From positions 62,001 through 126,000 of the forward strand of contig JAXLNO010004385.1 of the NCBI GenBank assembly GCA_038087875.1: a stretch of 64,000 bases of DNA, in the 5' to 3' direction. Below, piece after piece: positions 1,006 through 58,836 of the stretch. Within the stretch, counting starts at the first letter, position 1; each line of letters opens with the position of its first letter. The notes beneath the pieces are model-generated. The model was not told the DNA's origin and did not search any database. It saw only the letters and a list, made by a program, of their open reading frames with translations. A program made the position numbers and the translations under genes. This DNA is from Malacoraja senta. Taxonomy: Eukaryota.

Positions 1006-1029
1006 ACTCCCCTTACCCTGGATAGAATA
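841..1029. repeat. 63-bp tandem repeat x3 spanning the CR1 ORF1 start
   Basis: CATCTGACATCC starts at 841, 904 and 967 (period 63 = 21 codons). Confidence 0.95.
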
Positions 1030-1172
1030 TAAAACAAACTGCTACAATACAGTGCAATCAGCAGGGATCTGACTCCCAATCAGCTGCTCCCTCTTGTCTG
1101 CGTCCACCAATCAGCGGCTTCCTCAAACCCACTTGTTTTTGAAGTGGAACTTGGAACGTTACAGATTTCGGT

Positions 1173-2372: not shown

Positions 2373-2445
2373 ACCCCCACTAAAGCTGCCTTTGGTTTCA
2401 AACCGCTAAAGCTGCCTTTGGTTTCAAAACGCTAAAGCTGCCTTT

Positions 2446-7614: not shown

Positions 7615-7718
7615 AAAAATGTTTATCTGATAGCACAGATGGCGCTGCAAGCTACTATGGCCAGTATAATGGTTTACAAAGTAAAATTGCTGATGTGGCT
7701 GATCAACATGTTCATATA

Positions 7719-7773
7719 CAATACAATACAATACGGTTTTATTCGTCACATTGCACATAAAGTGCAAGTGAAA
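7719..7773 (-). mobile_element. 55-nt retroposed LINE 3' tail inside the hAT transposase
   Basis: The reverse strand reads TTTCACTTGCAC...GTGACGAATAAAACC(GTATT)n, like other LINE tails in the window. Removing it joins HVHI to WCYAH. Confidence 0.65.
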
Positions 7774-11430: not shown

Positions 11431-11639
11431 TTTACCAGGCTGGGACAGACGGCAACAGCTTCACACCGTGTCCCAAAGCTTGTGTCCTGTCCTGCTTCAC
11501 CCAGGCAGCAGAGACGTTATAGGAGAGGGCAAGCACCGTCACAAAGTAGCTCACGATGGTTTGGGTAACATTCAGGAATGTCTATGCATGTCACATCATG
11601 AATATAACTGAAGAAGGGTCTTGACCCGAAATATAATCT

Positions 11640-11895
11640 ATACCTTTTCTCCAGAGATGCTGCCTGACCCAGTGATTTGCTCCAGCACTCTGTGAAATGT
11701 CACCTATCCATGTTCTCCGCAGATGCTGCCTGACTCACTGAGTTACTCCAGCGCTCTGTGACATGTCACCTATCCATGTTCTCCAGAGATGCTGCCTGAC
11801 CCACTGAGTTACTCCAGCACTCTGTGACATGTCACCTATCCATGTTCTCCACAGTTGCTGCCTGACCCGCTGAGTTACTCCAGCACTTTGTGTCT
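11640..11895 (+). repeat. 66-bp tandem repeat x~4 of a Penelope-terminus segment
   Basis: GATGCTGCCTGAC-type motif at 11656, 11722, 11788 and 11854. It is preceded by a degenerate CTGAAGAAGGGTCTTGACCCGAAA core near 11607. Confidence 0.85.
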
Positions 11896-12859
11896 ATTTT
11901 CCCTTCAGCCATGTGCCCAAGCCCACTCTCCCCTCTCCTTTCCTATGTTCCTTTCCAACCATAAACCTATCTCTACCTTTACATTTCACTCCTCTTTCAA
12001 ATCTGCTCTACTTATCTACATGCATTTTTCTTCTTAACTTTTTAGTCATAGAATGATGCAGTGTGGAAACAGGCCCTTCAGCCCAACTTGCCCACACCGA
12101 CCAACATGTCCCATCTAAACTAGTCCCACTCACACGCGTCTGGCCCATATCCATGTAAACCTCTCCTATCCATGTACGTGTCCAAATGTCTCTTAAACAT
12201 TAGGATAGTCCCAGCCTTAACTACCTCCTCTGGCAGCTTGTTCCATATACCCACCACCCTTTGTGTGAAAAAGCTACCTCTCAGATTCCTGTTAATTTCT
12301 GAAATATTGGTCATGAATTTGATGCAAAAATGCTCCAAAATAAGGCTCAGAATGCATCAGAGAGCATCTAAAACCCCTGGACCCTGGCATCGAGGGACTT
12401 CACACTTCACGCTCGTGATGTGCACAGCGCGCACATTATTTCACATTACAATCATGCACAGCGCGCACATTATTTCACATTACAATCTTTTTGTGATCCT
12501 GTCATGCCACCCCCCTTTTTGAAAAGCTTCGTACGGGACTGAGTTAGGAAGGCATGTTGGTGCTTTACAGGTCATCAGCCACTGTGTAGCACTGGGAGAT
12601 GGTACTGATGAGTACAGTTTAGTCCTGGCACAGCAGTGTGTACTGATAGGGACAGATCTATCACTGCATAACAGAGAATGCTGGAGAAACTCAAGAGGTC
12701 AGGCAGCATCTGTGGAGGGAATGGACAGACAACATTTTTAGTTGGGACTATTCTTCACACTGATTGTAGTATGGGGGAAGAAAGCTGGAAAAGAAAGCTG
12801 CCGTCCAAAAACGAAAACTTGAATAAGCCCTTGATATAAGCCTGGCCGATTGTTTCACT

Positions 12860-13350
12860 GAACACCTTCACTCATTCCGCCTGGACCTACCTGATCTCCC
12901 GGTTCCCAAACACTTTACTTCCCCTTCCCATTCCCACACTGACCTTTCAGTCCTGGGCCTCCTCTTTTGTCAGAGTGAGGCCAAATGCAAATTAGAGGAA
13001 CAGCATCTCATATTTCACTTGGGCAGCTTACAACCAGTGGTATGAATATTGAGTTCTCTGACTTCGTAATCCCTGCATTCCCTCTCTCTCCATCCCTCCC
13101 CCACCCAAGTCGTACCAGCTTCAAAGTCCCTTCTCACCTAACAAACAGCTAACAATGGCCTGTTTTCTTTATCATCATTACTTTTGTGCAAATCTTTCAT
13201 TGATTTGATCTATAGCTCTCTACATCACCGTCTATATCTCCCTTCCCTTTCCGCAGTCTGAAGAAGGGTCTCAAACCGAAATGTCACCTTTTCTCCAGAG
13301 ATGCTATCTGACCAGGTGAGTTACTCCAGCTTTTTGTGTCTATCTTCAGT
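12860..13350 (+). mobile_element. Penelope-like element 3' fragment (GIY-YIG tail + terminus)
   Basis: Degenerate DLSVLGLL...EEQHLIFHLG coding followed by CTGAAGAAGGGTCTC...GAAATGTCACC. Confidence 0.7.
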
Positions 13351-13520
13351 GTAAGCTATAGCTTGCAAAAGGGTGGTTAATAAATATTATGTGAATGCTG
13401 CAGTGGGATTAAACAATGTCGACAATTGATGCGTAACTGACAGGAAGCAAAACATTTTGTAAAATATCTCCTTTGTTCTGGAGGTGCATAACAATGTTGT
13501 CACTGCCCCTGTAGCATCTG

Positions 13521-13536
13521 GTGCCCTCTTGTGGTC
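13521..13536 (-). promoter_or_regulatory. Candidate CTCF site
   Basis: The reverse strand GACCACAAGAGGGCAC resembles the CTCF core (GGCCACCAGAGGGCGC-like). It lies in non-repetitive sequence about 3.9 kb upstream of the MHC leader. Confidence 0.4.
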
Positions 13537-14104
13537 AAAGTTACAGTAATCTGGCGGTTGCTGTCCACAGATATTTTATTACAAATTTGGAACAACAAAA
13601 TTGATGCTGAGTCTCATCCCGGAATGTCAATAATTTCCTCCCTCCCCACAGATGCTGCTCGACCGCTGAGTTCCCCTAGGCTCCAGCAGTTTGTTTGTTG
13701 CTCCAGATTATGAGAGGCGTAGACAGTCAGAACCATTTCACCAGTTTGGAAATGCTCAACTTTAGAGGCCAGAGCTAGAAAGTGAAAAGGGGAAGGTTTA
13801 ATGGAGAAGTAGAGGGCATGTTTCTTTATACAGTGGGCGGGCGGGGGGGGGGTGGAACGCACTGTATGGGTGGTGGTAGTGCAGATATGATAGTAGGATT
13901 TAAGAGACTTTCAGATAGGCACATGGAAGTGCGGGGAATAATAATGAATTTTATTTATGGGCGCCTTATACCGAGGTCTCAAGGACACCTTACAGAGATT
14001 TATGGTTAACATATAATCAGAATTAAAAAAATAAGTTATAAAGGCCAATACACAAATCAGGGACAGAATTCCTTCCAAAAACACAAAAAAGAAAATCAGA
14101 CCAT

Positions 14105-14412
14105 TTTGTTTAGTTTTAGAGATACAGCGCTGAAATAGTCCCTTCATCCTACTGAGTCCGCGCCGACCAGCGATCCCCATAAACCAGCACCATCCGACAC
14201 AGGTGAGACAATTTACCATTGTTTTTACCGAAGGACAATAACTTACAAACCTGTATGTCTTTGGAGTGTGGGAGGAAATCAGAGCTCCCGGAGAAATCCC
14301 ATGTGATCACGGGGAGAACGTACAAACACCTTACTGACAGCACCCGTTGTCAGGATCGAACCCGGGTCTCTGGCGCTGTAAGACAGCAGCTCCACCGCTG
14401 CGCCATTGTGCC
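14105..14412 (-). mobile_element. tRNA-derived V-SINE (HE1-like)
   Basis: tRNA-like A/B-box head, V-domain (GGTTT..TCCGGG.GCTC.G.TTTCCTCCCAC..TCCAAAGAC), CR1-like tail ending (TAAAC)n. Confidence 0.8.
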
Positions 14413-15229
14413 ACCCCTAAATATGTTCACTATTCTATTGCAGAATCTCCAATCTCTCCCTCAATGTCAGCAAGGTGAATTTGAAGGAGCTAGTTATCGA
14501 CTGCTGGAAGGAAGATGGTGTTCTAGCCATAAGCTTCTGGGATGCACCGCAGCGGCAGAAGCAAATGACCACGGATCGCCCCACGGAACCCAACACGAAT
14601 CGACCAGGCGGCCGCCGAGAACGAAGATGGACTCGGCCGGTCGCCTGCAGCCATATGTGGCGGCAGGTTTGGTTCGCCGGTGTGAAGAGCAACCCGGTGG
14701 AAGCTGCTGAGCTTGGCCCCGAAACCCGGAGAGTCGTGGAGGAGGGAGCCGCTGCCGCCGACGGACGCAAGGAATGGGCCGCTAAGAGAGGGACTGAGGT
14801 ATTACCTCCAGGAGAGGAGTTGCCTCCCGGGACACAGAGCCAGTTGGGCGAGGAGAGGGACGTCTGTTGGCTGGCCGAGCTGGTCGAGGGTGACGGAGGA
14901 GGCCCCCCTGGCAATAGCCTGGGGTTTAACTGAGCTTACGTGGATCGGGGGCGCTCTAGTAAATCCAACATACGGACCGGACATTGGACTTTTTCTTTTT
15001 CTTTTGTAAATACTGCCAAATTACGGCGACGGGAGCAAGAATTTCACTGTGCAGTGCATAAGTGACAATAAAGAATCATTGAAACATTGAAGTCAGAATC
15101 AATACTGTAGAAGTGCGAGTGCTGAAGTGGGAATGGTGAAGAACTTCAAATTCCTCGGCATGAACAACCTGTTGCATTTTAGTCACTGGGGCAGAACTTT
15201 TAAAAGAATGGACGTTTAACAATCCATCT

Positions 15230-15700
15230 GCAGCAATATAGAAACAGAGAAAGCAGGTGCAGGAGTAGAAAATTATGGCCTTCAAGCCAGCACCGTCATT
15301 CAATATGATCATGGCTGAGCATCCAGAATCAATACCCTGTTCCTGCTTTCTCCCCATATCCCTTGATTCTGTAGCCCTAAGATCTAACTCTCTCTTGAAG
15401 ACATCGAGTGAATTGGCCTCCACTGCCTTCTGTGGCAGAGAATTCCACAGATTCACAACTATCTGGGTGAAAGCGTTTTTCTTCATCTCATTCCTAAATG
15501 GCCTACCCTTTACTCGTAAACTGTGACTCCTGGTTCTGGACTCCCCCCAATATCGGGAACATTTTTCCTGCATCTAACTGTCCAATCCCTTAAGAATTTT
15601 ATATGCGTCTATAAGATCCCATCTCATCCTAAATTCCAGTGAATATAAGCCCAGTCAGTCCATTCTTTCAACATATGTTAGTCCCGCCATACCGGGAAAA
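15230..15700 (-). mobile_element. CR1 3' fragment
   Basis: SRTRSHSLRVKG...VVNLWNSLP coding plus 3'UTR. Confidence 0.8.
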
Positions 15701-17243
15701 GAAATATTTTACTTTTTTATTGAACAATATCCTTGATTTTTTTGCTTTAAAAAAAAACATTCTGTTCCAGTCCCACCACAGAGATTTTTTGCTATATAAT
15801 TCTTTGGCTCCTTTCCGCCTTCAATCAATTGAAAGCCAGAGTGGTAAAGACACTATTCATAGCATTGAGTATAAGAGTCAGGAAGTCATATGCTGCTTTA
15901 TGGAACTTCAAAGATAGACACAAAATGCTGGAGTAACTCAGTGGGACAGGCAGCATCTCTGGATAGAAGGAATGGCTGACATTTCTGGTTGAGTCCCTTC
16001 AGGCTGAAGAGGAAAGGGAGACATGGAGATAAGGAAGTGTAAGGTATGAATGAATGACATCAAATGAGATGTAGTTCAAGGAAAATGTAGAATAGATCAT
16101 TATTAGCCAGGAGTAGGTGTGAACGAAGCATACATAGATAATTTTTAATCAGGGGGACAGTCAGACTGGTCGGAGAATAGAACTTCAGATAGGCCACTTT
16201 TAGAATATTATCGGCATTTCTGGTTGCCCCAATGCAGGATGAATTTGGAAGCATGGAATTTGTGCAGAGGTGGTTTGCCAGAATGATGCACAGATTAGAT
16301 ATTAGCTGGAAGGAGAGGTTGGACAGACTTAGATAGTAATCGCTAGAATGCTGGAGGTTGATAAAAGTATATAAAACTATGAGAGGCATAGATGGGATAG
16401 AGAGTCCGAATCTTTTCCACAGGGTGTAAATATAAAGTAATGGAGAGCATAGTTTTCAGGTGAGTGGGACATGGTGTAAAGGGCCATGTATTAACAGAAG
16501 GCTCAATGAGAGATTTCTGCACTGATGTTGAGACTGAGCTGCACATTTACACCTAGACACAACTTTAAACTGAGCTCATGTCTCTCCTCCCAGCTGAAAA
16601 AAAAGACGCATGGTATTACCTCAAATAAGGGCTGGGAAATTATTACACATGCATTGTCCAATTTTTATTACTTAAGCAATAACAGTAAAGTGGACTAAAG
16701 ACAGACACAAAAATGTTAGATAGAGCTCTAGAGCCTGGTGGAATCAAGGGATACGGGGAGAAGGCAGGCATTGATTGGGGACGATCAGCCATGATCACCA
16801 TGAATGGCAGTGCTGGCTCGAAGGGCCGAAGGGCCTCCTCATGCACCTATTTTCTATGCTTATAAAAAGATGGAGTAACTCAGCAGGTCAGGCAGCACTT
16901 CTGGGAAAAAGGAAAAGGTGACGATTTGTGTTGAGACCCTTCCCGAAATGTCACCTATTCCTTTCCCCCAGAAATGCTGCCTGACCCGCTGAGTTACTCC
17001 AGCTTTTTGCATCTGCCTACAGTAAAACAAGCATCTGCAGTTCCTTCCTACACAGTAAAGTAGACTATCTGGTTTATCTAACACTGCAGTTTGTGGAATT
17101 GACTGCATTCTGAATTGTAAAATCATTATACTTTGAGAAACATCTATTCGGCTGTAAGATGCTATGTGAAATATGATTTTGTAATTGTTGTCCTTAAAAC
17201 ACCAATATAATCCCTACCATAAAACCCAATCCGTAAACTGTAT

Positions 17244-17426: not shown

Positions 17427-17478
17427 ATGCTTCTTTTTACCTTACTGAACACTTACGGTGTGGCCACTGTCTCCTCTG
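17427..17478 (+). CDS. MHC class I-like exon 1 (signal peptide MLLFTLLNTYGVATVSS)
   Basis: ATG, hydrophobic core, small-residue cleavage site; phase-1 donor G|GTAAGC in frame with the alpha1 exon. Confidence 0.8.
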
Positions 17479-17781
17479 GTAAGCAATACTGCTTCAACCT
17501 GTGAACTTTGAGGAAACAACAAAACTGATTATATTTACTGTTGCACAGTGCCTGTGTTTGCCCTGGGTTCATTGTCTTGGATGTATTAATTGAATGATTG
17601 AATTGAATGTATTAATAATTTTGGGTAACGGTCTTTCCTTAGTTGTAAAGGCTCCTGTGGGAAGTTATATATACTATGGTTACCTTGGCAATCCATTGAA
17701 CAGAAGAACTGAATACATGTAAATAATGAACATAGAACATAGTACAATACAGCACAGGAGCAGGTCCTTCAGTCCTTCAGT

Positions 17782-17809
17782 CTGAAGAAGGGTCTCGACC
17801 CGAAACGTC
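17782..17809 (+). ncRNA. Minimal hammerhead ribozyme core of Penelope terminus type (best-preserved copy)
   Basis: CUGAAGA + A + stem II GGGUC-UC-GACCC + GAAA + CGUC (palindromic ACGU stem III, GUC cleavage triplet). Local stem I is only 2 bp. Confidence 0.6.
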
Positions 17810-19758
17810 ACCCGTTCCTTTTCTCCAGAGATGCTGCCTGACCCGCTGTTACCTCAGCATTTTGTCTACCTTCGGCCCACAATGTCTGTGCCGAACAAAC
17901 TAAACTAATCTCCTCTACCTGTATGTGATCTGTATCCGGCCATTCCCTGCCTATCTATGTACCTATCTAAAAGCCTCTGAAATGTAACTGTTATATCTGC
18001 CACCATCACCACAACCACCACTGGCAGCGCGTTACAGATGTCCACCACCCTCCACATAAAACAACTTGCTCCGCTCATCTCCTTTGAACATTGCTTCTCC
18101 AACCTTAAAGTGATGTTCTCTGGTCTTCAACATTTCCACCCTGGGAAAAAGGTTCTGGCTGTCCACTCTGTCTGTGCCTCTCACCATGTTGTGCACTTTC
18201 ATCAGGTCTCCCTTCAACCTCCAGTATACAAGAGAAAACAATCCATGTTTGTCCAATCTGCCCTTGCACTAATGCCTCAGACAGAATTCAGGTGATGTGC
18301 ACTTTCAATAAAGAAGTGACTTCTGCATTAGTAGGTGTTCCACCTCTCCAAGATTTCCTCAGCTGGTGTTAGACACCCACATGATGGTAAAATTCAGCCT
18401 GCATTAAATGACCAATCAATGTTGTGTTAATGTTGTTGCCATCTTGTTGTTTGTTGCATGCTTCCTGTCCTGCAGACCCTATCCATTACCCCATCACCAC
18501 TTCCCCAGAAGACGATAATGAGATTTAAGAAGCTTGAGGATAGGCACGTGGATATGCAGGGAATTGAGGGATATGAATCATCTACAAGCATGAAGAGTTT
18601 AGTTGAACTTGACATCATGTTCGGCACAGACATTGTGGCTGAACTCCAGCCCATTACACCCTTAATGAACAAAAATCTATCAATCTCAATCTGCAAATTT
18701 TCAAGTGGGCAACATATTCAACAGATTACAGAATCGAGAACCAGAGGACATAGGTTTAAATTGAGGGGGGAAAGATTGAATGGGAATCTGATGAGCAATT
18801 TCTTCCCACACAATGGTACCTTTCTAACTATTCTGACATTCATCAAGGCTTGGAGATTACAAACCTACTCGTCCTGAAAGTTTAATCCCATTGTTATCAA
18901 ATGAAAGTAAATATAATGGTGTTAAAGAAGGAACTGCAGATGCTGGAAAATCGAAGGTACACAAAAATGCTGGAGAAACTCAGCGGGTGCAGCAGCATCT
19001 ATGGAGCGAAGGAAATAGGCAACGTTTCGGGCCGAAACCATATAATGGTGATGGCCATGTTGAAATAATAACATATAAAACAAAAATCCTCGGCTGTGGA
19101 GTGTTTTGGGAAGCCACATGGATTTTATCGTTACTGTATTCCACTCTTAGCCGTCTTATGTTTCTCCTGGTAACACTGAAACAGACACTTCTAACTCTGC
19201 CCTCGGGGCCCCTTCTCACTTCACTTAAACACATGAACTTTGACACTGTCTGGTGTGCTGCATGTAATCTTTATCACAGAACAAATACTGCTTATGCATG
19301 TGGAAACAAGAAACTGCACATGCTGGTTAATACACATAAAATACTGGAGTAATTCAGCAGGTCAGGCAGTATGTCTGGAGAACATGGTTAGGTGATGTTT
19401 CAGTTGACACAAGTGTAGGAAGGAAGTGCAGATGTGTAAGAAGGAACTGCAGAAGCTGATTTAAACCGAAGATAGACAATAAAGCTGGAGTAACTCAGCG
19501 GCACAGGCAGCATCCCTAGAGAGAAGGTATGGGTGACGTTTCGGGTCGAGACCCTTCTTCTGACTGCTGATGCAGATGCTGGTTTACACCGAAGATAGAT
19601 ACAAAAGGCTGGAGTAACTCAGCAAGTCAGGCAGCATCGCTGGAGAAAAGGAATAGGTGGAGTTTCAGGTCAAGACACTGCATCAGACAGAGTCGGGGGT
19701 GCATATATTTCATTGTACTTTGTCATATCTCTCGGTTCTCTGTCCCCTGACTCTCATT

Positions 19759-19786
19759 CTGAAGAAGGGTCTCGACACGAAACGTC
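19759..19786 (+). ncRNA. Second minimal hammerhead core in MHC intron 1
   Basis: CUGAAGAAGGGUCUCGACACGAAACGUC: core intact, one stem II mismatch, very weak local stem I. Confidence 0.45.
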
Positions 19787-20917
19787 ACCTTTTCCTTTTC
19801 TCCGGAGATGCTGCCTGACCCACTGAGTTACTCCAGTATTTTGTGTCGAGTTTCAATTTAGGCCCTGTTTATCTCAGTCTCCACCACCCCCCCCCCCCCC
19901 CCCATCTCTATGAGCTGTGTTGCAGCTGCCTATGAGGACCTGGACTCAATCCTGATCTCTTACAACCTGGCTTTTTTTTCCCCCCTGCAAACGTGTGTTT
20001 GCTATGGTTATTCCAGTTTCCCCGCACGTCCCCAAAATGCCAGGCTGAAAGGTAAATTGGCCAGTGTGAATTGGTCATGCATATGTATTAGAATTGGTGG
20101 AGGGGATGAGGGAGGTGTTAATGGGAGATTGGCAAATATTAAAAGGGTTAGCGTACCACAGGTATAAATAGGTGTTTGATGGTCACCACGAACTTGGTGG
20201 GCTAAAGGGCCTTTTATGTGCTGTACCCAGTGGACATAAGTTTAAGATGAGGGGGGAATGATTTAATAGGAACCTGAGGCATAGCATTGTTACACAAAGG
20301 GTGGTGGGTGTACTGAATGAACTGCCGGAGAAGGTAGTTCAGGCGCGTACTATCACGACATTTAAGAATCATTTAAACGGGTACATGGATAGGATAGGCT
20401 TATAAGGATATGGGCCTCAGTCAGCTGTAGAGCCCACATCAATGGATATTTCTCAGGTGGAGATTAACAGATTCTTGATCAGTATGGGTTTCAAGGGTTA
20501 TGGGGTGCAGGCAGGAGAATGTGGTTGATAGGGAGAGATAGCTCAGCCATGATTGAATGGCCGATGGGCTGAATGGCCTAATTATTCTCCTAGAACTTAT
20601 GTACTGATGAAATACAGGCAGTGTAGATGAGGCATGTTGGTTGGTGTGGCAAGTTGAGCCATAGGCCCTGATTCCCTGCTGTATGACTCTTTGACTTTAC
20701 CTCTCTATGATTCTATAAAGTCTCCTTGACATTGTCCAGTTTCTAAATATAATAAAATATTCTTCAAATTTTGGAATATTGTAACTAGTAGAACCTATCG
20801 ACATGATAGACAATAATAGATCTTTGAAGATGGGAAACAATCCAGTAGGATCATTCAATACCTCGACCATAATTGGTGGAGTAGGTATCAGAGCCCATCA
20901 TGCCAACTCTTGAAGAA

Positions 20918-21225
20918 GGCTCAGTGGTGCAGCGGTAGACTTACTCGATTACAGCACCATAGACCCAGGTTGGATCCTGATTACGGATGCTGTCTGTACG
21001 GAGTTTGTCCATTCTCCCCATTACCGTGTGGGTTTTTCCCGAGATGTTCGGATTCTTCCCACATTCCAAAGACGTATAGGTTTGTAGGTTAATTGGCTTG
21101 GTCTAGAATGTAAATTGTCCCTAGTGTGTGTAGGATAGTGTTATTGTGTGGGGGTTGCTGGTCAGTGTGGACTCGCATGAAGGGCCTGTTTCCATGCTGT
21201 ATCTCTAAGCTAAAAACTAAACTAA
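20918..21225 (+). mobile_element. V-SINE (HE1-like)
   Basis: tRNA-like head GGCTCAGTGGTGCAGCGGTAGA, V-domain, (TAAAC)n tail. Confidence 0.8.
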
Positions 21226-21416
21226 AGGCTCCTGACCCAAATTGTCACCTGATCATTGATGCTGCCTGCCCCACTGAGTTCATCCAGCACTTGCATCTGC
21301 AGGTCCTTGTGACTCCCTTATTCAAAGTTATTGTATTGTTATCAGTTTTAGCATTAATAACTTAGTTATTTTCAGTGAATGATACAATCATACTTATTTT
21401 TGTTTATGCATTGCAG

Positions 21417-21677
21417 ATTTACACCATCTTGCATTTTACTACCTGTTGAACCATGGATTGAATGAGCTGCCTGAGTACAGTATGGTAGCAATGCTGGATG
21501 ACGTTCAGATAGCATATTTTGACAGCACACTAGAGCGGGCTGTTCCCAGACAGCGATGGATGGCCCAGTCTTTCCCGCAGGATCACTGGGATTCAATGGC
21601 CATCACAGTTGCAGGTTTTCATGGGATTGTCAGAGGAAATGCTGAGATAGTCTACCAACAGCAACATGGTATCTCGA
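21417..21677 (+). CDS. MHC class I-like exon 2 (alpha1 domain, 261 nt)
   Basis: Acceptor TTGCAG and donor A|GTAAGT. Translation: DLHHLAFYYLLNHGLNELPEYSMVAMLDDVQIAYFDSTLERAVPRQRWMAQSFPQDHWDSMAITVAGFHGIVRGNAEIVYQQQHGIS, with class I motifs LDDVQI.YFDS, PRQRWM and HW. Confidence 0.93.
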
Positions 21678-23421
21678 GTAAGTGTCGTGAGCGGACCTGG
21701 GGTAGACACTCAGTGATGACACAGATGGATTTTGTTTTAGTTTTATTGTTGACACATGATTCTCTGATACACTTTTTTTGCGTTAGTCAATCACATCAAA
21801 GAAAACTATTCATAAATACAATCAAACCAAACTCATACAATAGGTAGAGCAAAGAGTGCAGAATGTAGTTCTCAGCATTGTAATGTACCAGTGCCAGAGA
21901 CAAAGTCCAGTGTCTACAATGGGGTTGAGGTGAACCCTAGCATAAGGGAGGACTGTTCAGAAACCTGATAACATAGGGGAGGAAACAGTTACTGAGTCTG
22001 GTGGTGCACGCTTTAATGCTTACGTACCTTCTGCAGGAAGAAGGAGTGACCAGAACGGGACAAATCTTTGATTATGTTGTCTGCTTTCCTGAACCAGTTG
22101 AAATACAGATGGATTCACTGGTGGGGAATCATGTTTGTGTGATCGACTGTGCTACATCTCCACCTCTCTGCAATTTCCAGCGGTCTTGGGCAGAACTCTT
22201 TCCAAACTAAGTTGTGATGCAACCTGTCAGTATGCTTTCTATGGCACATTTGTAGAAGTTTGTAAGAGTCATTGGAGATGCCGCATTTCCTTAGTCTCCT
22301 GAGGCAGTAGGGGAACCAGAAACTCTCAACCTTTTTCACTTCAGCACCATTGATGCTGTTTCAGACATTTACTCCATAACATTTTGATAGAGACACGGCC
22401 CATCGTCTATATTTAATGTGTCCTAACTGCTGAACACACAGTCATAACAGTTGGCTGGTGATAGTCTCTTTATGGGTTAAGCATTTGATATTCAACACCA
22501 GTAATAAGTGGATGGATTGGATCATCTGTTTTGTTGGGCTGGAATGAGGGAGAAACCATTAGTTTATTTATAGCCTGATCATCTAGAGATGGGATCTTGA
22601 TTTAAGCTGGTTGATGGTGACTATGAGGTATTCCCTCAGTAATAATATTGTGTTAATCCAGCATCCCCTCAATATTGGCAACAATCCTCAGAGGGTGTAG
22701 CAATCCCACACAGTGCAACAGCCTTGATGTACTTCCCATCTGCATTGCCTTAACCTTCAGACTGACCTGTTGGCTCTGTAGCATTGCCCATCTGACAATG
22801 CACTTCTTCCTCTGTTCTTTATGTACGACAGTGCAGAATCTGAGTTCCACCCTTCTGACACAGCAGAACTCCTTTAGTGTTACATCCGCAACAGTAAAGC
22901 TTCCCCCCTCAACACTTGAGGTTAGTCCATGCCCTCAGTATATAGACCATGGGTCATTGAGTCACACATCATGGAAACCGGCCCTTCTGCTCACTGAATC
23001 CACATTGATCATCCATTGTGCTAAGATGGAGTCACAGCAAACTGCAGATGCTGCCAATCTGAATTTAAAACAAACAGGAGGAACTCAACGAGTCAGGCAG
23101 CATGCTGTGGAAAAATGGACAGAAAACATATGAGACCAGGACCATTTAGAGTGATGGGGTAGAGTGGAGAAAGCTGGAAAAGAAAAGTAGTCTGTGTAGG
23201 ATAGTGTTAATATGCGGGGACCATTGGTCGGTGCGGACTCGGTGGGCCGAAGGGCCTGTTTCCGCGCTGTATCTCTGAGCTAAACCTGCTCCTGTGCTGT
23301 ACAGCTCCATGTTGTGTTCTGTTATGCCTGTTTGTACCATGCTGAGAACTGATTTGTAAATTGCCTCTCCCTTCCATCCACTCTCCCCAACACAAATCCT
23401 CCACCCCTACCTCAGCCCCAG

Positions 23422-23697
23422 CTGTTTGCTTTGTGCAGGGTTTCTGCGGCTGTGAAGTGGACAGTGACAATTCCACTGATGGGTTTGTCAGACTGGGTTA
23501 TGATGGGGAGGATGCCTGTGCTTTTGACAAGGACAGAATGCGCTGGATTGCACTACGTCCAGATTTCCAGATGCTAGCAGATCGGTGGAACGTCAACACC
23601 TTCATGAACAAGTATTTTAAAGATCTCCTGGAGAAGGACTGTGTGAAGTGGCTGCGGATATATCTGGAGTGTGGACAAGAAGCACTACAGAGGAGAG
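23422..23697 (+). CDS. MHC class I-like exon 3 (alpha2 domain, 276 nt)
   Basis: Acceptor CCCAG, donor G|GTACAC, canonical 276-nt size. Translation: TVCFVQGFCGCEVDSDNSTDGFVRLGYDGEDACAFDKDRMRWIALRPDFQMLADRWNVNTFMNKYFKDLLEKDCVKWLRIYLECGQEALQRR (GCE, YDGED, C...WL..YL). Confidence 0.93.
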
Positions 23698-23794
23698 GTA
23701 CACGACGTAGGCACTCTGACTGATGGGCCAGAGGATATCCTCTGGATAGATCAGGTGGGAAATATCATGCACGTCAGGCTGTCACTTGAGTAAT

Positions 23795-24086
23795 TATTTA
23801 GTTTAGTTTAGAGATACAGCGCGGAAACCCACCGAGACCGCACCGAGCAGCCATGCCCGCACACTAACACTATCCTACACACACTAGGGACAATTTGCAT
23901 TTATACCAATCCAATTAACCTACAAATTTGTACGTCTTTCGAGTGTGAGGGGAAACCGAAGATCTCGGATAAAACCCACGCAGGTCACAGGGAGAACGTA
24001 CAAACTCTGTAAAGACAAGCACCCGTAGTTAGTAACAAACCCAGGTCTCTGGCGCTGTAAGGCAGTAGCTCGACCGCTTCGCCACC
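23795..24086 (-). mobile_element. V-SINE (HE1-like)
   Basis: Same tail, V-domain and head as the other copies. Confidence 0.78.
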
Positions 24087-24901
24087 CTGTTCTACAACGT
24101 GGGTATCAGTAAATTGTCTGGCAACGTGCCTCTTAGATGGAACCAGTGGGTAGGAAGTGCAAGTGAAAGATAAATATTGTACCAGTGTCCTTTATCCACA
24201 GTCATATAGATATTCAGGAAATGGAGGAATATGTATCTTGGTCTTATGTTTAGCACCGACCTTGTGGCCTGAAGGGTCTGTTGCTGAACTGATCAGAAAC
24301 CCAATCAGATTCTCTATTTGCCTCTATTACTCCTTGGGATGGTGACATTCAATTTCCAACAGTTCTCTATTTGAAGAACTTCTTCCTCCCATTCCCTCTT
24401 GGAATATTTAGTGTTATTATTCAGCAGAGATTCATGAACAGGTAGAAGCAATCATGTCTACAGTATCAATCCCAATGGTGAGTTATACTCCTCCATTGGG
24501 CCTGCATTCCCCTTTCATCTGTGCTGTCAGTTAAAGTCTGGAGCTAAGATAAGGAGCATGTCAGTGATATTAAAGCTAAATGTTTTGTTGTTTTGCCAGA
24601 AATGCAAAATGAAAAGAGAAAAGGCTGTAAACTTTGTGCAAGATAGAACTGCAGATGCTGGTTTACACTGAAGATAGAAGATGTTGGTGTAACTCAGTGG
24701 GTCAGATAGCATCTCTGGGCATTCCTTCTCTCCAGAATGCTGCCTGACCTGCTGAGTTATTCCAGCATTTTGGGTCTAGGCTGAAAACTTAGTTCAGCCA
24801 GAGAAAAAACTCTGATTGGGAAAGTGGTGAGTTGCAGTGATCTTACAATTGAAGGCTTTTGTTCATGTCTTCACTGATTCTGACTCTTCTTACACTTGCA
24901 G

Positions 24902-25174
24902 AAACCCCTGAGGTGTTTATTGGGATTAAACGTGATGGGTCGCAATCACTGAGACTCTCCTGCCTTGTCACAGGCTTCTAGCCACGGGCCATCGATGTAA
25001 CGTGGCTGAGAGATGGTGAGGGGGTCCATGAGTCTGAATCCAGTGATCTGTTGCCCAATTGGGATGGGACTTACCAGCTGAAGAATACAATTCAACTGAA
25101 TAGAGAAGATGTGGCAAAATTCTCCTGTTACATCGAACATGCAACTCTGCTGCAGGGAGTCAATGTTCCACAGG
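24902..25174 (+). CDS. MHC class I-like exon 4 (alpha3 C1-set Ig domain, 273 nt) with in-frame TAG
   Basis: Acceptor TTGCAG and donor G|GTAAGT. Translation: ETPEVFIGIKRDGSQSLRLSCLVTGF*PRAIDVTWLRDGEGVHESESSDLLPNWDGTYQLKNTIQLNREDVAKFSCYIEHATLLQGVNVPQ. Confidence 0.93.
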
Positions 25175-25267
25175 GTAAGTGGCAAGTCAATGAGGCTGAT
25201 CACTTGAGACCATAAACCTCCTGGACTGAGATAACAGTCTCAACTCACACTCTTAACTAAGCTGTGG

Positions 25268-25900
25268 ATTTAGACTTTAGGCTTTAGAGATATGCTGCAG
25301 ATACAGGCCCCTCAGCTCACTGAGTCCTCGCTGAATAGTGATCAACCCATACATTTACACTAACCTACACAGTACGGACAATTTACAATTTTACCTAAGC
25401 CAAGTAACCTACAAACCTGTATGTCTTTGTAGTGTGGGAGGAAACCCACGCAGTCACAGGGAGAACATACAATGTCCTTGCAGACAGCACCTGTAGTCAG
25501 GATCAAACCCAGGTCTCTGGTGCAGTAAGGCAGCAGCTCTACCGCTACGCCACTGTGCCACCCATTATTAATTTGTGGTTATCTAATTGCTCATAATTAT
25601 TGATAGTCAATGGAATGTGGTTTTAGTTTAAGAGATACAGCACAGAAACCGGCCCTTCAGCCCACCGAGTCTGCGTCAACCAGCGATCCCTGCACACTTA
25701 CATTATCTTACTTATTAGGGGACAATTTACAATTATACCAAGCCAATTAACCTACAAACCTGTATGTCTTTGGACTGAGTGAGGAAACCGGAGATCCAGG
25801 CAAAACCCACGCAAGTCCCGGGGAGAAGGTACAAAACTCTGTACAGACGGGACCCGTAGTCAGAATTGAACCGGGTCTCTGGCGCTGTAAGGCAGCAGTT
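25268..25900 (-). mobile_element. Two adjacent V-SINE copies (about 25268-25560 and 25621-25900)
   Basis: Tail/V-domain/head order occurs twice on the minus strand. Confidence 0.78.
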
Positions 25901-26368
25901 CCACCTAGTGGGCAAAGCAGAGCCAAATGGAATACAGTGTAGCAAGTGTCTGGTTTTACATTTTGGCAGTCGGAATAAAGACATAGACTATTTTCTAAAT
26001 GGGGAGAGAATTGAGAAACCTGAGCTACAAAGTGGGAGTACTAGTGCAGGATTCCCAAATAGTTCATTTGCAGATTGAGTCAGTGGTAAGTAAGGCAAAT
26101 GCAATGCCAGCATTCATTTCGGGGGGCGTAGAATATAAAAACAATGATATAATGCTGAGGATTTATCGGGCACTGGTGAAGACACATTTGGAATATTGTG
26201 AGCAGTTTTGGGCTCCATATTAGAAAGGATGTGCTGGCTTTGGAGAGGGTCGAGAGGATGTATGTCCTGGGGATGATTGATTTAACGTATGAGGAGTGTT
26301 TGAAGTCTCTGTGCCTGTGCTCATGGGATTTAGAAGGATGAGGTGGGAATCTCATTGAAACCTACCAG

Positions 26369-28065
26369 CAGGGCCGGATTTAGATGAAGAGAGGCCCTAA
26401 GCTGTTCCACTTGTGAGGCCCCCCCCCAATCCCCCACCCCCACGACCAGAGGAAGATGGTCCACCAGATTGACACCGATTTGCAGCCGAGCGTGGCCAAT
26501 GAGATAAGGGGCTGGAAAGCTGGGCTTTATTTATTTATTTATTGCCACTGCTAGTGTCGAGTTATTGGCTTAAAACACTATTATTCTGAAATGGAGGGCA
26601 AGGAAAATTACTGAAGTGTTGTTTAGAGACTACAGTGCATTGTGACAGCATATGTAAGAAAGGCCTATGACAGTGTCAAAAATATTATACACCTTGCAGG
26701 GCTCTCACTTAATTTTTTTTCTCTGTTGTCAGCCGGGCAACCTTGGTAGCTTTTTAAGTTGCCAAATGACAGTTTAGGTGGTTATTTAAGATGGCTTGCA
26801 TGACACGTGCGATAATGTGCTCGGACGACCAGTCAGAATTATGCTCAATGAAGCATTCACATATTATTTCTGCTTCAAATAAAGCCACAAACTAAACATA
26901 TTCACCAATCAGGACATGATATATACCACAATGACATGCAGCACAATTATAATACTGTATCTTAACTCTTTTTACACGTTGCAATGAATGCAATTTCTAT
27001 TATTTCTTTCCACTTCCAAAAAAAAATGTGGTTGGATTATTCAGCGTATGATCAACCTCGGTGAGACCAAGTGCAGGCTTGGCGATTGCTTCGCACAACA
27101 CCTCCACTCAGTTCGCAATAACCAACCTGATCTCCCGGTGGCTCAGCACTTCAACTCCCCCTCCCATTCCGAATCTGACCTTTCTGTCCTGGGCCTCCTC
27201 CATGGCCAGAGTGAGGCCCACCGCATATTGGAGGGGCAGCACCTCATATTTGCTTGGGTAGTTTACACCCCAGCGCTATGCACATAGGCTTCTCTAATTT
27301 CAGGTAGTCCTTGCTTTCTCCCTCCTTCCCCTCCCATTCCCAGCTCTCCCACAGCCTACTGTCTCCGTCTCTTCCTTTATTTTTCATGTCATTCCCCCCC
27401 CCCCCCCGACATCAATCTGAAGAAGGGTCTCGACCCGAAACATCGTCTATTCCTTCGCTCCACAGGTGCTGCCTCACCCGCTGATTTTCTACAGCTTTTT
27501 TGTCTACCAATGGGATCCCACAACTGGCCACATCTTCCCATCTCCTCCCCTGTTGGCTTTCCATAGAGACCGCTCCCTCCATAACTCCCTGGTCAATTCA
27601 TCCCTTCCCACCCAAACCACCCCCTCTCCTGGCACTTTCCATTGCAACTGCAGGAAATGCTACACTTGGCGTTTTAATTAAGTTCAAGACAATGGGGCTG
27701 TACATTGGCCATAAGGTTGCTGCCTAAAAGTGCCAGAGACCTGGAATTGATCCTGAATATGGGTGTTGTCTGTTTGGAGTTTGCTCCTTTTCACTTTGAT
27801 CGCATGGGTTTTCTTCGGGTGCTCTTGTTTCCTTCCACATTCCAAAGGTGTGCAGGAACCTATTTCAGAACCAACCCTAAACGTAATATTTCCCTTTTGT
27901 CCAGAGATTCTGTCTGACCTGTTGAGTTACTCCAGCTTTGTGTGTCTATCTTCAATTTAAACCAGCATTTGCAGTTCCTTCCTACACACACGATACTATA
28001 CGATAGAACTTTATTAATCCCAGGAGGGAAATTGTGTGTGTGTGCGTGTGGGTATATATACTATG

Positions 28066-28097
<32 letters not shown>

Positions 28098-29889
28098 CAA
28101 TACAATTACAATACAATTTTATTTGTCTTTTGGACAAATTTGTCATTTGGACCCCGTTGAGGTCCAAACGAAATGTCGTTTCTGCAGCCATACATTACAA
28201 AACGAAGAAGACCCGAGACACAACACAATTTACACATACATCCATCACAGCGCTGTGATGGAAGGCAAAAAAACGTATCTCTCCACTGCACTCCCCCCCC
28301 CCACCCCCCCGATGTCAGAGTCAAAGTCAAAGCCCCCGGCGGGCGATGGTGATTATCCCGCGGCCATTAAAGCCACGCCGGTTAATGCAGGGTCGCGCAC
28401 CGCGTCTTGGTGTTAGAGCCCCGGCGCGCGCTCGCAAAGTCCGGCGGCCATTCCAAGCCGCGCGGGGCGGTGATGTAAAGCTCCCCTCCAGGTGCTCTTC
28501 AACCCCGCAACTCGGGCGGGAGAAGTCGCCGCTGCGGATGCCCCGAAAAGCGGTGTCCCACCAGGGGACCCACGGGCTTCCGGTGTTGCCGTCCGCCAGA
28601 CCCGCGGTTGTAGCCTCCGAATCTCCGGGGGTCGGGTAGCAGCAGCGATTGTCTCCACCACAGCTATAAATATACACCGTTTTGTTTTCTCGTTTATAAC
28701 ATTGTTTACAGAGTACTATGTTTACATATTCTGTTGTGCTGCTGCAAGTAAGGATTTCATTGTTCTAACTGGGACATGAGAGAATAAACTCTTGACTCTT
28801 GACTTACTTCGCTAATGTGTGGGAAAGAACTAGTGTACGGGTGATCAATAGTCGGCGTGGACTCGGAGGGCTGAAGGGCCTGTTTCCACGCTGTATCTTC
28901 AAATTAAGCTAAAGACACTAAAACCAGAGGGAGTCTAAAGAAGTGTATCTACCCGAAACGTCACCCAATTTCTTCTATCCTGAGTTGCTGGCTGCTCCAT
29001 GGAGTTCCCCCGCACAATTAAAGCATGGAATAGTCTTCACCCTACCATAGTTACCCAACCAGACGCAACTAAATTTAAGGTACCTCTTTTTTCCCCAAGA
29101 ACCCTTTTTTGCTTAAGTCCAAGTCAAGAGTCAAGAGAGTTTTATTGTCATGTGTCCCAGATAGGACAATGAAATTCTTGCTTGCTGCAGCACAACATAA
29201 TATGTGAACATAATACAGAACAGGAGATAAAAGTTCAGTGTGTTTATATACCATAGACCATATATATACACAATAAATAAACAGATAAAATGCAATAGGC
29301 TGTTATTGTTCAGCCCTCTACCACCTCCAGTTTAAATTCCTTTTAGAATATTTATGGAGGATCAGGAAACCAGAAGCGAGAGTTACTCCAGGGAGATACT
29401 CCTGATCCAGGGTCAGGGAGTGATTCTGTGTTAGTTTTCAGCGGTTGCGGCGAGGCAGCAATGGCGGCCAAATCTCCCACAATTCAAAGCGAGGGAGAAA
29501 GTGCCCAGCCCCGACCAGTTGCCGTGGCAGTGCGCATGCGCAGGGCGGCCGATGACGTGCGGGCTGTGGTTGTGCGCATGTGCAGGGGAGGACGTGCTGG
29601 CCGTAGCAGTGTGCATGTGCAAGGCGGCCGGCCGTGCCGGCGGATGAGGAGCGAGCGGAGAACGGAGACCCGGACACGGAGAGTGACAGACGGAGATAGA
29701 GATAGAGAGGGGGGCCACCCCGCCCAGAGTTGAACGGCTGGTGTCCTGCCTTGGCCGGAGGCCCCCTATATTTCAGGGCCCCAGGCTTCACCCTATGAAG
29801 CCTAGTGGTAAATCCGGCTCTGCGAGCCCCTCCTAGATCTCCAGGCCCTAAACTGAAGCTTGTCCATCTTATATGTAAATCCGGCCCTG
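26369..29889. mobile_element. Non-autonomous hAT element (3.5 kb) with nested retroelements, inserted into a CR1 fragment
   Basis: TIR CAGGGCCGGATTTA (26369-26382) / TAAATCCGGCCCTG (29876-29889); 8-bp TSD CCTACCAG at 26361-26368 and 29890-29897. The CR1 frame NLIETYQ|IMK is restored on excision. Confidence 0.92.
27050..27690 (+). mobile_element. Penelope-like element fragment nested in the hAT
   Basis: GETKCRLGDCFAQHL...DLSVLGLLH (GIY-YIG C-terminus) and a hammerhead-like terminus at 27417. Confidence 0.8.
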
Positions 29890-31250
29890 CCTACCAGATA
29901 ATGAAATGCCTGGTTAGTTGATGGGAAAGGAAGTTTTCAGTAATGGGAGAGTCTAGCACAGCCTCACAATAAAAATACCTACCTTCCAATATGGAGATGA
30001 GGAGGAATCTCTTTAGTCACAGGGTGGTGAATCTGTGGAATTCATTGATACAAACAGCTGTGTGGGTCAAGTCATTGCATATTTTTCAAGCAGAGATTGA
30101 TAGGTTCTTGATGAGTACGGGTGACAAAGGTTACAGGGAGAAGGCTAGAGAATGGGATTTAGCGGTAAAAAATAGATCTGCTATGACTGAATGGTGGAGT
30201 AGACTCAATGGACTTGAAAGGCATAATTCCGCTCCAATATCTTATGGTCAAAATAATTCTTATGTCACCCTTAACTCACCCATCCAAATGTAGGAACAGT
30301 GGAAGCAAGATAGGCTGATCCTGGACAAGGTCTCTTATCTTCTTCCTTGGGCATCTAGCTAATTTTCTGATAGTAGCTAGTTACACAAAAGACCAATAGT
30401 GGTGCCATATTATCAGGCTGAAGTAGCAGCACCTGTTCTGTAGCTGACTTATTTGTTCCAGACAAGACCTCTGCAAAGATCTTCACACCAGGGCCAAGCT
30501 GACATGGTTAAGATTGCTGGTCAGTACAAATAGACAGTAGTGTTAATGTCTGTGTGTGCCTATGTGTGTGTGTGTGGGCTCATGTGTGTGAGACAGTGAG
30601 GGGGAGAGAGAGAGAAAGAGAGAGCATGTGTATGTGAGAAAATTAAACTCAGATATCATTGAAATATCAGCAAAGATTAAAACCTTTGAAGTTTTATCAA
30701 CTATAAATGGGTTCACTTTTATTTGCTATAATAACAATCAACATAAGAAAATGGCCTTGTTGACCTCTACACTGTAAATAGTCATATATTTCTGACGTAC
30801 TTGATTCTTTAAATTCTTAATTAAATGCTGCAGATAAAATCTCAATACCTCAATGCTAATATGAACTTAATGATTTTTCATTGATCATTTTAAGCACATC
30901 CATCCTCTGTATAAATACTTAAATCTAAAACTTTATTACTTTTTAATTAGATATGAACAGTGCTACTTTAATTTAGATAATAAAATCATTACAATGTTGT
31001 TATTGATCACTAAATGTTTAAAATGCACTATACAGTGGCTTGCAAAAGTTTTCATACCCCTTGAACTTTTCCACATTTTGTCACGTTACAACCACAAACG
31101 TAAATGTATTTTATTGGGATTTTATGTGATAGACCAACACAAAGTGGTGCATAATTGTGAAGTGGAAGGAAAATGATACATGGTTTTCAAATTTTGTTAC
31201 AAATAAAAAACTGAAAAGTGTCGCGTGCAAAAGTATTCAGCCCCCCTGAG

Positions 31251-32272
31251 TCAATACTTTGTAGAACCACCTTTCGCTGCAATTACAGCTGCAAGTCTTT
31301 TGGGGTATATCTCTACCAGCTTTGCACATCTAGAGACTGAAATTTTTGCCCATTCTTCTTTGCAAAATAGCTCAAGCTCAGTCAGATTGGATGGAGAGCA
31401 TCTGTGAACAGCAATTTTCAAGTCTTGCCAGAGATTCTCAATTGGATTTAGGTCTGGACTTTGACTGGGCCATTCTAACACATGAATACGCTTTGATCTA
31501 AACCATTCCATTGTAGCTCTGGCTGTATGTTTAGGGTCGTTGTCCTGCTGGAAGGTGAACTTCCGCCCCGGTCTCAAGTCTTTTGCAGACTCTAACAGGT
31601 TTTCTTCCAAGATTGCCCTGTATTTGGCTCCATCCATCTTCCCCCATCAACTCTGACCAGCTTCCCTGACCCTGCTGAAGAAAAGCATCCCCACAGCATA
31701 ATGCTGCCACCACCATGTTTCACAGTGGGGATGGTGTGTTCAGGGTGATGTGTAGTGTTAGGTTTCCGCCACACATAGCGTTTTGCATTTAGGCCAAAAA
31801 CTTCAATTTTGGTCTCATCTGACCAGAGCACCTTCCTCCACATGTTTGCTGTGTCCCCCACATGGCTTGTGGCAAACTGCAAACGGGACTTCTTATGGGC
31901 TTTTTTCAACAATGGCTTTCTTCTTGCCACTCTTCCATAAAGGCCCGATTTGTGGAGTGCACGACTAATAGTTTTCCTGTGGACAGATTCTCCCACCTGA
32001 GCTGTGGATCTCTGCAGCTCCTGCAGAGTTACCATGGGCCTCTTGGCTGCTTCTCTGATCAATGCTCTCCTTGCCCGGCCTGTCAGTTTAGGTGGACGGC
32101 CATGTCTTGGTAGGTTTGCAGTTGTGCCATACTCTTTCCATTTTCGGATGATGGATTGAACAGTGCTCCGTGAGATGTTCAAAGCTTGGGATATTTATTT
32201 ATAACCTAACCCTGTTTTAAACTTCTCCACAACTTTATCCCTGACCTGTCTGGTGTGTTCCTTTGGCTTCAT
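31251..32272 (-). pseudogene. Tc1 transposase, nearly intact
   Basis: MKPKEHTRQVRDKVV...GRPPKL...WSDETK...QQDNDPKH...SPDLNPIE (34 residues between D and E)...GGSTKY*. There is one premature TAA (codon 26) and one frameshift in a G5 run near 31641-31645. Confidence 0.93.
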
Positions 32273-32348
32273 GATGTTGTTTGTTCACTAATGTTCTCTA
32301 ACAAACCTCTGAGGCCTTCACAGAACAGCTGTATTTATACTGAGATTA

Positions 32349-32705
32349 GATTAATAATAATAATAATAATAATGGATGGGATTTATATAGCGCCTTTCTA
32401 ATACTCGGCGCTTTACATCGCATTATTCATTCACTCCTCAGTCACACTCGGTGGTGGTGAGCTACTTCTGTAGCCACAGCTGCCCTGGGGCAGACTGACA
32501 GAAGCGTGGCTGCTAATCTGCACCTACGGCCCCTCCGACCACCACCAATCACTCACACACATTCACACACATTCACACGCAGGCAAAGGTGGGTGAAGTG
32601 TCTTGCCCAAGGACACAACGACAGTATGCACTCCAAGCGGGATTCGAACCGGCTACCTTCCGGTTGCCAGCCGAACACTTAGCCCATTGCGCCATCTGTC
32701 GTCCC
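32349..32705 (-). mobile_element. tRNA-derived CORE-like SINE with (ATT)n tail nested in the Tc1 5' region
   Basis: tRNA-like head (GGTTCGAATCCC B-box), CORE-like GTGTCCTTGGGCAAGACACTT, L2-like tail TGTAAAGCGCC...GGCGCTATATAAAT, 7-bp TSD GAGATTA (32342-32348; 32706-32712). Confidence 0.85.
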
Positions 32706-33023
32706 GAGATTACACACAAGTGGACTCTATTTACTAATAAGGTGACTTCTGAAGGCAATTGGTTGCACTGGATTTTATTTAGGGGTATCAGAGTAAAGGG
32801 GGCTGAATATTTTCGCACGCGACACTTTTCAGTTTTTTATTTGTAAAAAAATTTGAAAACCATGTATAATTTTCCTTCCACTTCACAATTATGTGCCACT
32901 TTATGTTGGTCTATCACATAAAATCCCAATAAAATACATTTACGCTTGTGGTTGTAACGTGACAAAATGTGGAAAAGTTCAAGGGGTATGAATACTTTTG
33001 CAAGCCACTGTATATGCCAACAG

Positions 33024-33244
33024 AGAGGGCAGTGAAAGAAGATATGAAGATTAGGATCGTGACTGGAGCTGTAATTGTTCCTCTCATTCTCCTGGGGATC
33101 ATCCTTGGAATTGGTTGCTGGAAGAAGAGGAAAAAGAGAAAACCTTTCAATGAACAGGTACCAGCTGACAACAGCAGAGACCAGGAGAGGACCATGAAGC
33201 ACAATCAGCTTCCTTTGGGATGCAGAGGAGGTCTACCGGAATGA
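33024..33244 (+). CDS. MHC class I-like exon 5 (connecting peptide, TM, cytoplasmic tail)
   Basis: Acceptor CAACAG, phase 1. Translation: ERAVKEDMKIRIVTGAVIVPLILLGIILGIGCWKKRKKRK... (hydrophobic TM plus basic stop-transfer). The 3' end is uncertain: read-through to TGA 33242-33244, or a donor after 33157. Confidence 0.8.
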
Positions 33245-58762: not shown

Positions 58763-58836
58763 ATGATGAGATCCTGCTTTGATGTTGGTGAATTTTGGCT
58801 CAGTTGCTGCTGTTGATGCGAGACGTTGTGCGTGAA

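Follow-up and report, generated by a model that had tools for sequence, protein, structure and literature searches.

The window analyzed here, i.e. a stretch of 64,000 nucleotides from Malacoraja senta contig JAXLNO010004385.1 (positions 62,001 to 126,000, forward strand; coordinates given below count from its first letter), carries a five-exon gene of the class I major histocompatibility complex (MHC) type at 17427-33244 on the plus strand. The exons were assigned by six-frame reading and inspection of splice sites, with all introns being of the GT-AG type and in phase 1, and the resulting model starts and ends exactly on the coordinates that an initial annotation of this DNA had proposed. 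The gene and the two lesions found in it are composed as follows (residues in human leukocyte antigen (HLA) numbering):

17427-17478, plus strand: exon 1, leader peptide MLLFTLLNTYGVATVSS plus one nucleotide (phase 1), followed by the donor GTAAGC.
21417-21677, plus strand: exon 2, alpha1 domain, with F7 and H59 in place of tyrosines, the helix motif ITVAGFHGIVRG and the N86 sequon gone.
23422-23697, plus strand: exon 3, alpha2 domain, 276 nucleotides (the canonical class I length), with the C101-C164 pair kept, an NST sequon and the helix MNKYFKDLLEKDCVKW.
24902-25174, plus strand: exon 4, alpha3 C1-set immunoglobulin domain, with one stop codon within.
24979-24981, plus strand: in-frame TAG at the tyrosine of the conserved GFYP motif, which thus reads GF-stop-P.
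31029-33014, minus strand: Tc1/mariner element in the last intron, with inverted ends of 224 nucleotides (95% complementary) and a TA target duplication.
33024-33244, plus strand: exon 5, encoding connecting piece, transmembrane helix and a cytoplasmic tail that is basic and lacks a tyrosine sorting motif, ending with TGA at 33242-33244.

This architecture, with one exon per domain, phase-1 introns, an alpha1-alpha2 MHC_I platform, a C1-set domain and a transmembrane segment, is that of the MHC class I superfamily. Pfam recognizes alpha2 as MHC_I (2e-16), alpha3 as C1-set (6.9e-9) and alpha1 weakly as MHC_I (1.4e-5); the match of the gene to MHC_I_3 remained under the cut-off of that family. 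With the RefSeq skate protein XP_055486430.1 (Leucoraja erinacea), the product shares 86% of its residues along the entire length and 92% of those in alpha1-alpha3, and the gene is therefore not a chance open reading frame (ORF). Its leader is of a type (MLLVTLLNVYCVP.VSS) that also opens the sawshark and sevengill orthologs. Within alpha2, an extra cysteine is found at position 99 and another, C93, in the window copy only. The window is free of N runs, and tblastn with the gene product revealed no second class I gene body within it.

When 1.84 billion proteins were searched by phmmer with the alpha2 exon as query, one protein matched at 96% identity; a second, fragmentary skate protein (XP_055486496.1) was also matched. 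The scaffold that encodes XP_055486430.1 (L001; GCA_028641065.1 JAMYXN010000384.1) is colinear with positions 17330-40090 of the window. Under the window exon model, its leader, alpha1, alpha2 and alpha3 exons fall at 100-151, 10001-10261, 12708-12983 and 18999-19271, respectively, with a canonical leader and alpha2 donor, a leader peptide identical to that of the window gene and a reading frame that stays intact through alpha3. The RefSeq model itself lacks the leader and includes 12 extra residues (GTRPRHSDWWNG) beyond the alpha2 donor, which, as the canonical donor is present in L001, stem from the donor choice of that model. The idea that L001 represents the same locus or haplotype as the window was rejected, since L001 matches the window at no more than 86-93% in introns and flanks and shows an empty Tc1 site (...GCTCTATATTTGCCTACAG followed by AGAGGG). 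Hence, XP_055486430.1 is treated here as an intact paralog, from which the window copy differs by about 3% in alpha1 and alpha2, 5.5% in alpha3 and 12% in the transmembrane exon.

The TAG, for which the paralog has TAC, is the sole stop in the reading frame of the window gene and would truncate its product in alpha3. The Tc1 element, in which two overlapping ORFs (31251-31637 and 31592-32182, minus strand; HTH_Tnp_Tc3_2 5e-26) make up a split transposase, ends 11 nucleotides upstream of the acceptor of the transmembrane exon. Both lesions are specific to the window copy and absent from XP_055486430.1. In addition, the window copy carries derived changes at otherwise conserved sites, namely F to L at mature position 2, F93 to C and L169 to R. 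Given the TAG and the Tc1 insertion close to the acceptor, the window copy is most likely a young pseudogene.

A search with the intact paralog recovered a compact set of RefSeq proteins that have been named only automatically ('MR1-like'), with 72% identity in sawfish, 66-67% in manta and stingray, and 54-60% in sharks (sawshark, sevengill, catsharks, zebra, epaulette, bamboo, smooth-hound and basking shark). The set spans at least 12 sharks and rays, with a single gene in most species; the window gene is 55-75% identical to its members, and the identity of the window gene and its paralog to all other lineages is about 33-39% or lower. In a careful IQ-TREE analysis of 45 sequences (LG+C20; MR1 sequences were not included in the trees), this set, referred to as the window lineage in the following, is supported with 100/100, with rays and sharks splitting as in the species tree. 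The UGA sequences form a second clade with 100/100, and both clades are joined with 100/96 by a branch beyond which UAA-like sequences, a family from Callorhinchus and a multicopy clade confined to sharks are placed. A quick tree with more sequences concurs. Sawshark, sawfish and skate each possess members of both the window lineage and UGA, and the two are therefore paralogous. The duplication that gave rise to them is thus older than the shark-ray split.

The window gene is thus firmly established as a non-classical class I gene of a UGA-sister lineage, distinct from UAA-like sequences, UFA and the shark-only multicopy clade. The trees bear out the earlier description as a divergent non-classical molecule, as no grouping with UAA-like sequences was found: the 100/96 branch separates the gene from the UAA-like P0168, P0206 (best Protein Data Bank (PDB) match 6LUP) and P0212, and while P0168 keeps all eight classical anchors compared, the window gene reads F7, H59, Q84, L143, R146, W147, L159 and Y171 at these positions. 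The initial annotation had left open whether the molecule belongs to a known or an undescribed lineage of cartilaginous fish. It can now be placed as sister of UGA in the known 'MR1-like' RefSeq set, whereas membership in UAA, UFA or UGA did not hold. The window lineage falls outside the UGA clade and shares only 39% identity with the UGA structure 9CH4, compared to 78% for the true UGA member P0028. Against the intact paralog, UFA (8GM8) reaches 115 bits and 30% identity and ranks under MR1 and classical class I. From the shark-only multicopy clade, the window gene is set apart by C101 and C164, both absent in that clade. This clade (P0164-P0225, RefSeq 'F10 alpha chain-like'), having lost both alpha2 disulfide cysteines, is probably the published UEA lineage, a name assigned here by us.

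In chimaeras, the search for orthologs yielded only a Callorhinchus-specific multicopy family with 32-36% identity, for which the window lineage is the best elasmobranch match by a narrow margin; a grouping of the window lineage with the Callorhinchus clade to the exclusion of UGA was marginally rejected (approximately unbiased test, p = 0.039). With alpha1 as query, the Protein Atlas gave nothing more specific than clusters named 'MHC class I antigen'. As to a published name, UDA may apply, which is a guess and not a settled assignment. UDA is a cartilaginous-fish lineage that Almeida et al. reportedly described in 2020 as single-copy in elasmobranchs, and the window lineage likewise comprises a single gene in most elasmobranchs. 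By map position, too, the window lineage falls in the cluster to which UDA, UEA and UFA are ascribed (PMC10751288), yet it is multicopy in skate and Heptranchias. In the sevengill shark Heptranchias perlo, eleven proteins of the window lineage (P0155, P0234-P0243), mutually more than 90% identical, are spread over several contigs of 76-530 kb, which suggests a lineage expansion or uncollapsed haplotigs. For the skate, at least three copies would have to be counted if the window were L. erinacea DNA.

The kinship with UGA is mirrored by gene order, as a second class I leader exon is found 25 kb downstream of the window gene on the same strand:

58816-58887, plus strand: leader exon (MRDVVREMILFILLSFFRVQGAQA) belonging to a class I gene of the UGA lineage, with GTAAGT as phase-1 donor and the remainder of the gene beyond the window.

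Its leader is identical at 21 of 24 residues to the N-terminus of the L. erinacea UGA-type protein P0031. The same order on one strand is observed on sawfish chr34, where a UGA-type gene at 14.020 Mb (plus strand) comes after the ortholog of the window gene (13,956,125-13,977,896, plus strand), with two more genes flagged as MHC-Ib farther downstream. This sawfish class I cluster is flanked by B2M/BRD2 and COL11A2/RXRB/HSD17B8. Within the MHC-Ib cluster, the gene of this lineage is the immediate upstream neighbor of UGA. Verissimo et al. (2023) described this cluster, and their supplement tags the sawfish ortholog as 'MHC-Ib' only (PMC10751288); the family has therefore already been catalogued.

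The residues that would line the binding groove were compared across lineages at 41 pocket-lining positions:

Window lineage: mean Kyte-Doolittle value +1.2 to +1.5, with 2-3 of 41 positions charged and 26-27 of 41 apolar.
UGA: mean +0.3 to +1.05, with 3-7 of 41 charged and 20-25 of 41 apolar.
UAA-like sequences: mean +0.07 to +0.43, with 6-11 of 41 charged and 18-23 of 41 apolar.

The window lineage hence has the most apolar groove positions among the cartilaginous-fish lineages compared, and these are near-invariant from skates to sharks. Its lining consists of F7, M63, V/M67, F70, I/L73, V74, I80, V/F81, V95, G97, C99, I/V114, L116, A123, L143, M152, Y155, F156, L159 and L160. Between window copy and intact paralog, only position 150 differs among the 41 (T150 in the former, I150 in the latter), the other 40 being identical. 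Within the lineage, the groove is no less conserved than the remainder of alpha1-alpha2, with pairwise identities of 0.80 and 0.72, respectively (permutation p about 0.05); the shark-only multicopy clade has a groove that is more variable than the remaining alpha1-alpha2 (0.50 versus 0.62). The helix motifs AGFHG(I/L)(V/I)(K/R)G in alpha1 and MNxYFKxLLEKDCV in alpha2 are common to the window lineage and UGA. Position 99 on the groove floor is an unpaired cysteine (CGC motif together with C101) in each of the ten window-lineage sequences from sharks and rays, and Phe in UGA; rays of the window lineage add C124.

The individual residues named in the initial annotation were verified by alignment with P0168 (a sawshark sequence of classical type with every anchor retained), nurse-shark 6LUP-like sequences and other lineages, and every one of them was recovered. 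The peptide-terminus anchors are changed to F7, H59, Q84, A123, L143, R146 and L159, with W147 and Y171 kept. All of the apolar residues reported for the alpha1 helix (M63, V67, F70, I73, V74, I80, V81), the floor (V95, V114, L116) and the alpha2 helix (M152, Y155, F156, L159, L160) are present. The N86 sequon is gone, leaving NST in an alpha2 loop as the sole N-X-S/T of the translated ectodomain. The contact residues for beta2-microglobulin (Q96, D119, G120, D122 and LPNWDG in alpha3) are all kept at the sequence level. The further suggestion of CD1-, MR1- or ZAG-like ligand binding stood in part: it agrees with the most apolar and conserved groove positions and with UGA as sister lineage, but neither the chemistry of MR1 nor a CD1-type YXXphi tail was found.

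The best PDB match is 9CH4 ('Crystal structure of shark nonclassical MHC class I, UGA'), with 82 bits for alpha1, 58 bits for alpha3 and 207 bits for the whole intact paralog. For the alpha2 exon, MR1 chains are the best PDB matches (64 bits). An AlphaFold2 model of the paralog ectodomain (predicted local distance difference test score 80.8; 85-95 across most of alpha1-alpha2) displays the standard class I topology with the expected strands and helices. A fold search with this model again gave 9CH4 as top match (Z 23.7, 39% identity), followed by MR1, classical class I, chicken CD1-1, ZAG, HFE and FcRn at Z 21-23. With CD1, MR1, ZAG, HFE and classical folds all at Z 21-23.7, the fold therefore does not separate functions.

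Taken together, the locus is best explained as a duplicated, probably inactivated copy of a conserved elasmobranch MHC-Ib gene from a UGA-sister lineage, the intact members of which would have a lipid-like ligand, a reading that we hold with moderate confidence. A non-peptide, lipid-like ligand for the intact members is the best inference, because of the kinship with UGA and the chemistry of the groove residues. Such members would be type I membrane proteins associated with beta2-microglobulin, in which the tyrosine, threonine and lysine clamps of peptide ends are lost. In an open groove, they would most likely hold one conserved hydrophobic, non-peptide and lipid-like ligand, and the resulting complex may then be recognized by an innate-like lymphocyte receptor.

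UGA, which corresponds to RefSeq 'F10 alpha chain-like' genes of sharks and rays, is the closest known relative, being sister clade (100/96) as well as best sequence and structure match, sharing G97, A123, Y155, F156, L159 and L160, neighboring the window lineage on one strand of the MHC-Ib cluster and occurring, like it, in both sharks and rays. At 36-45% identity, UGA differs in keeping Y7, Y59 and the N86 sequon, in polar or charged residues at positions 67 and 80 and in F99 for C99, so that the window lineage is the more apolar of the two. Some UGA members (P0251, P0259) also carry a YXXphi motif in their tails (AYNAV, AYENI). UFA (8GM8, titled as such) is another MHC-linked, low-copy elasmobranch class Ib lineage that has been called CD1-like (PMC10751288), and it shows some alpha1 similarity (50 bits) in spite of its low overall score. 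According to a review, both UFA and UGA bind CD1d-type lipids, with UGA being CD1-like (PMC12562908), and lipid binding by the two is also mentioned elsewhere as 'unpublished data' (PMC10751288). Tetrapod CD1 resembles the window lineage in its class I fold with C1-set alpha3, its apolar groove positions and the lost peptide anchors (chicken CD1-1 Z 21.6), while no specific sequence kinship is detectable (21-26% identity). Another difference lies in the tail: CD1b, CD1c and CD1d possess a tyrosine-based endosomal sorting motif there, whereas the window lineage is without YXXphi.

Several points weigh against the interpretation as an inactivated copy from a lineage of lipid-type presenters. The statement on lipid binding by UFA and UGA in the review is sourced to a personal communication (PMC12562908). 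Tyrosine is absent from the cytoplasmic tails in the window lineage, so that the YXXphi of several UGA members and CD1b-d is missing. The alpha1 helix is rich in glycine (G69, G72, G76), which could let the helices pack into a closed groove. The ratio of nonsynonymous to synonymous changes between window copy and paralog (dN 0.032, dS 0.078, dN/dS 0.41; by domain 0.38 for alpha1, 0.31 for alpha2 and 0.78 for alpha3) rests on just 35 differences, so that little evidence of decay is left apart from the two lesions. Finally, the TAG may stem from misassembly or be polymorphic.

Among the alternatives, a third, still unnamed CD1-like elasmobranch lineage may tentatively be considered, which would have arisen together with UGA ahead of the shark-ray split and, unlike in most species, would have expanded to several copies in skate, of which the window copy is decaying. 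Here, Cys99 might tether or sense the ligand, conceivably in analogy to MR1, in which K43 captures the ligand covalently.

It is rather unlikely that the groove is closed or empty, with the molecule acting without a ligand of its own as an invariant ligand or chaperone like MIC/ULBP, HFE or FcRn and the apolar residues serving in helix-sheet packing. Near-invariant groove positions would be in line with such a role, as would the G-x-x-G-x-x-x-G pattern of alpha1 (G69, G72, G76), which could permit tight packing of helices, and the scores of HFE, FcRn and ZAG (Z 21.2-21.6), nearly level with CD1 in the fold search. However, UGA has the same glycine pattern and is nonetheless reported to be lipid-loaded (PMC12562908). 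Moreover, the small floor residues G97, A123, C99 and V95 should widen the cavity rather than fill it, and MIC/ULBP, HFE and FcRn usually also lose beta2-microglobulin or the conservation of the groove floor, neither of which is seen here.

Somewhat less probable still is that the window copy is functional, in which case the TAG would stem from faulty sequencing or assembly, or from a null allele that segregates, and the intron would tolerate the Tc1 element. All splice sites are canonical, no further stop or frameshift occurs in 360 codons, and alpha1 and alpha2 differ from the paralog by 3% as opposed to 7-14% in introns, with dN/dS of 0.31-0.38. This view is opposed by two independent lesions, neither of which is in the paralog, by the end of the Tc1 element 11 nucleotides from the acceptor, displacing the likely branch point, and by the derived changes at mature position 2, F93 and L169.

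Presentation of a restricted set of hydrophobic peptides or lipopeptides, as by HLA-E/Qa-1, chicken YF1*7.1 or the macaque molecules binding N-myristoylated peptides, has only a slim chance of being correct. It could draw on W147 and Y171 being kept, the conservative K146R exchange and the intact alpha2 disulfide and beta2-microglobulin contact residues, and class I molecules that bind lipopeptides have been reported (PMC12212280, PMC12804144). Yet, seven of the nine terminus anchors are lost, including Y7 and Y59 of the A pocket and Y159, and no polar residue is left to hold a peptide N-terminus.

Least likely is that the lineage presents small polar metabolites in the manner of MR1, as the RefSeq name, which derives from MR1, would imply. 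In favor of this, MR1 is the best alpha2 match among tetrapod molecules, its chains top the PDB matches of the alpha2 exon with 64 bits, and MR1 structures follow close behind 9CH4 in structural re-ranking. However, the MR1 ligand contacts are not conserved, with the Schiff-base K43 replaced by A/T/I/C (A in the window copy) and, from the polar/aromatic cradle of MR1 (R9, R94, W69, W156), R9 by Y and R94 by G, the groove is apolar with just 2-3 charged residues, and the trees group the lineage with UGA, although, these trees being without MR1, the case rests on residues and identity.

Non-peptide presentation of the CD1/MR1 type has long been considered a tetrapod invention. Shark UFA and UGA move lipid presentation back to the base of jawed vertebrates, and if a lipid-like ligand holds true for the window lineage, a second ancient lineage, more apolar still and highly conserved, would stand beside UGA, such that early vertebrates would already have had a small family of lipid-type presenters. 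The intact skate paralog offers a defined target for ligand and T-cell studies, and the window copy adds, for the skate MHC-Ib cluster, no more than a datable case of birth-and-death turnover.

Outside of the class I gene, positions 1-16000 and 40000-64000 of the window contain repeats only, save for the UGA-type leader exon. Rfam, applied to both strands of the whole window including intron 1, returned no family at its gathering score. Retrotransposon-like ORFs without Pfam match (e.g. 3596-4273, 5595-7268 and 9709-10248) are probably of the long interspersed nuclear element (LINE) type. A hAT transposase remnant is located at 8512-9108 (Dimer_Tnp_hAT 1.7e-9), and a weak GIY-YIG match at 52211-53053, just under the Pfam cut-off, may belong to a Penelope-like element.

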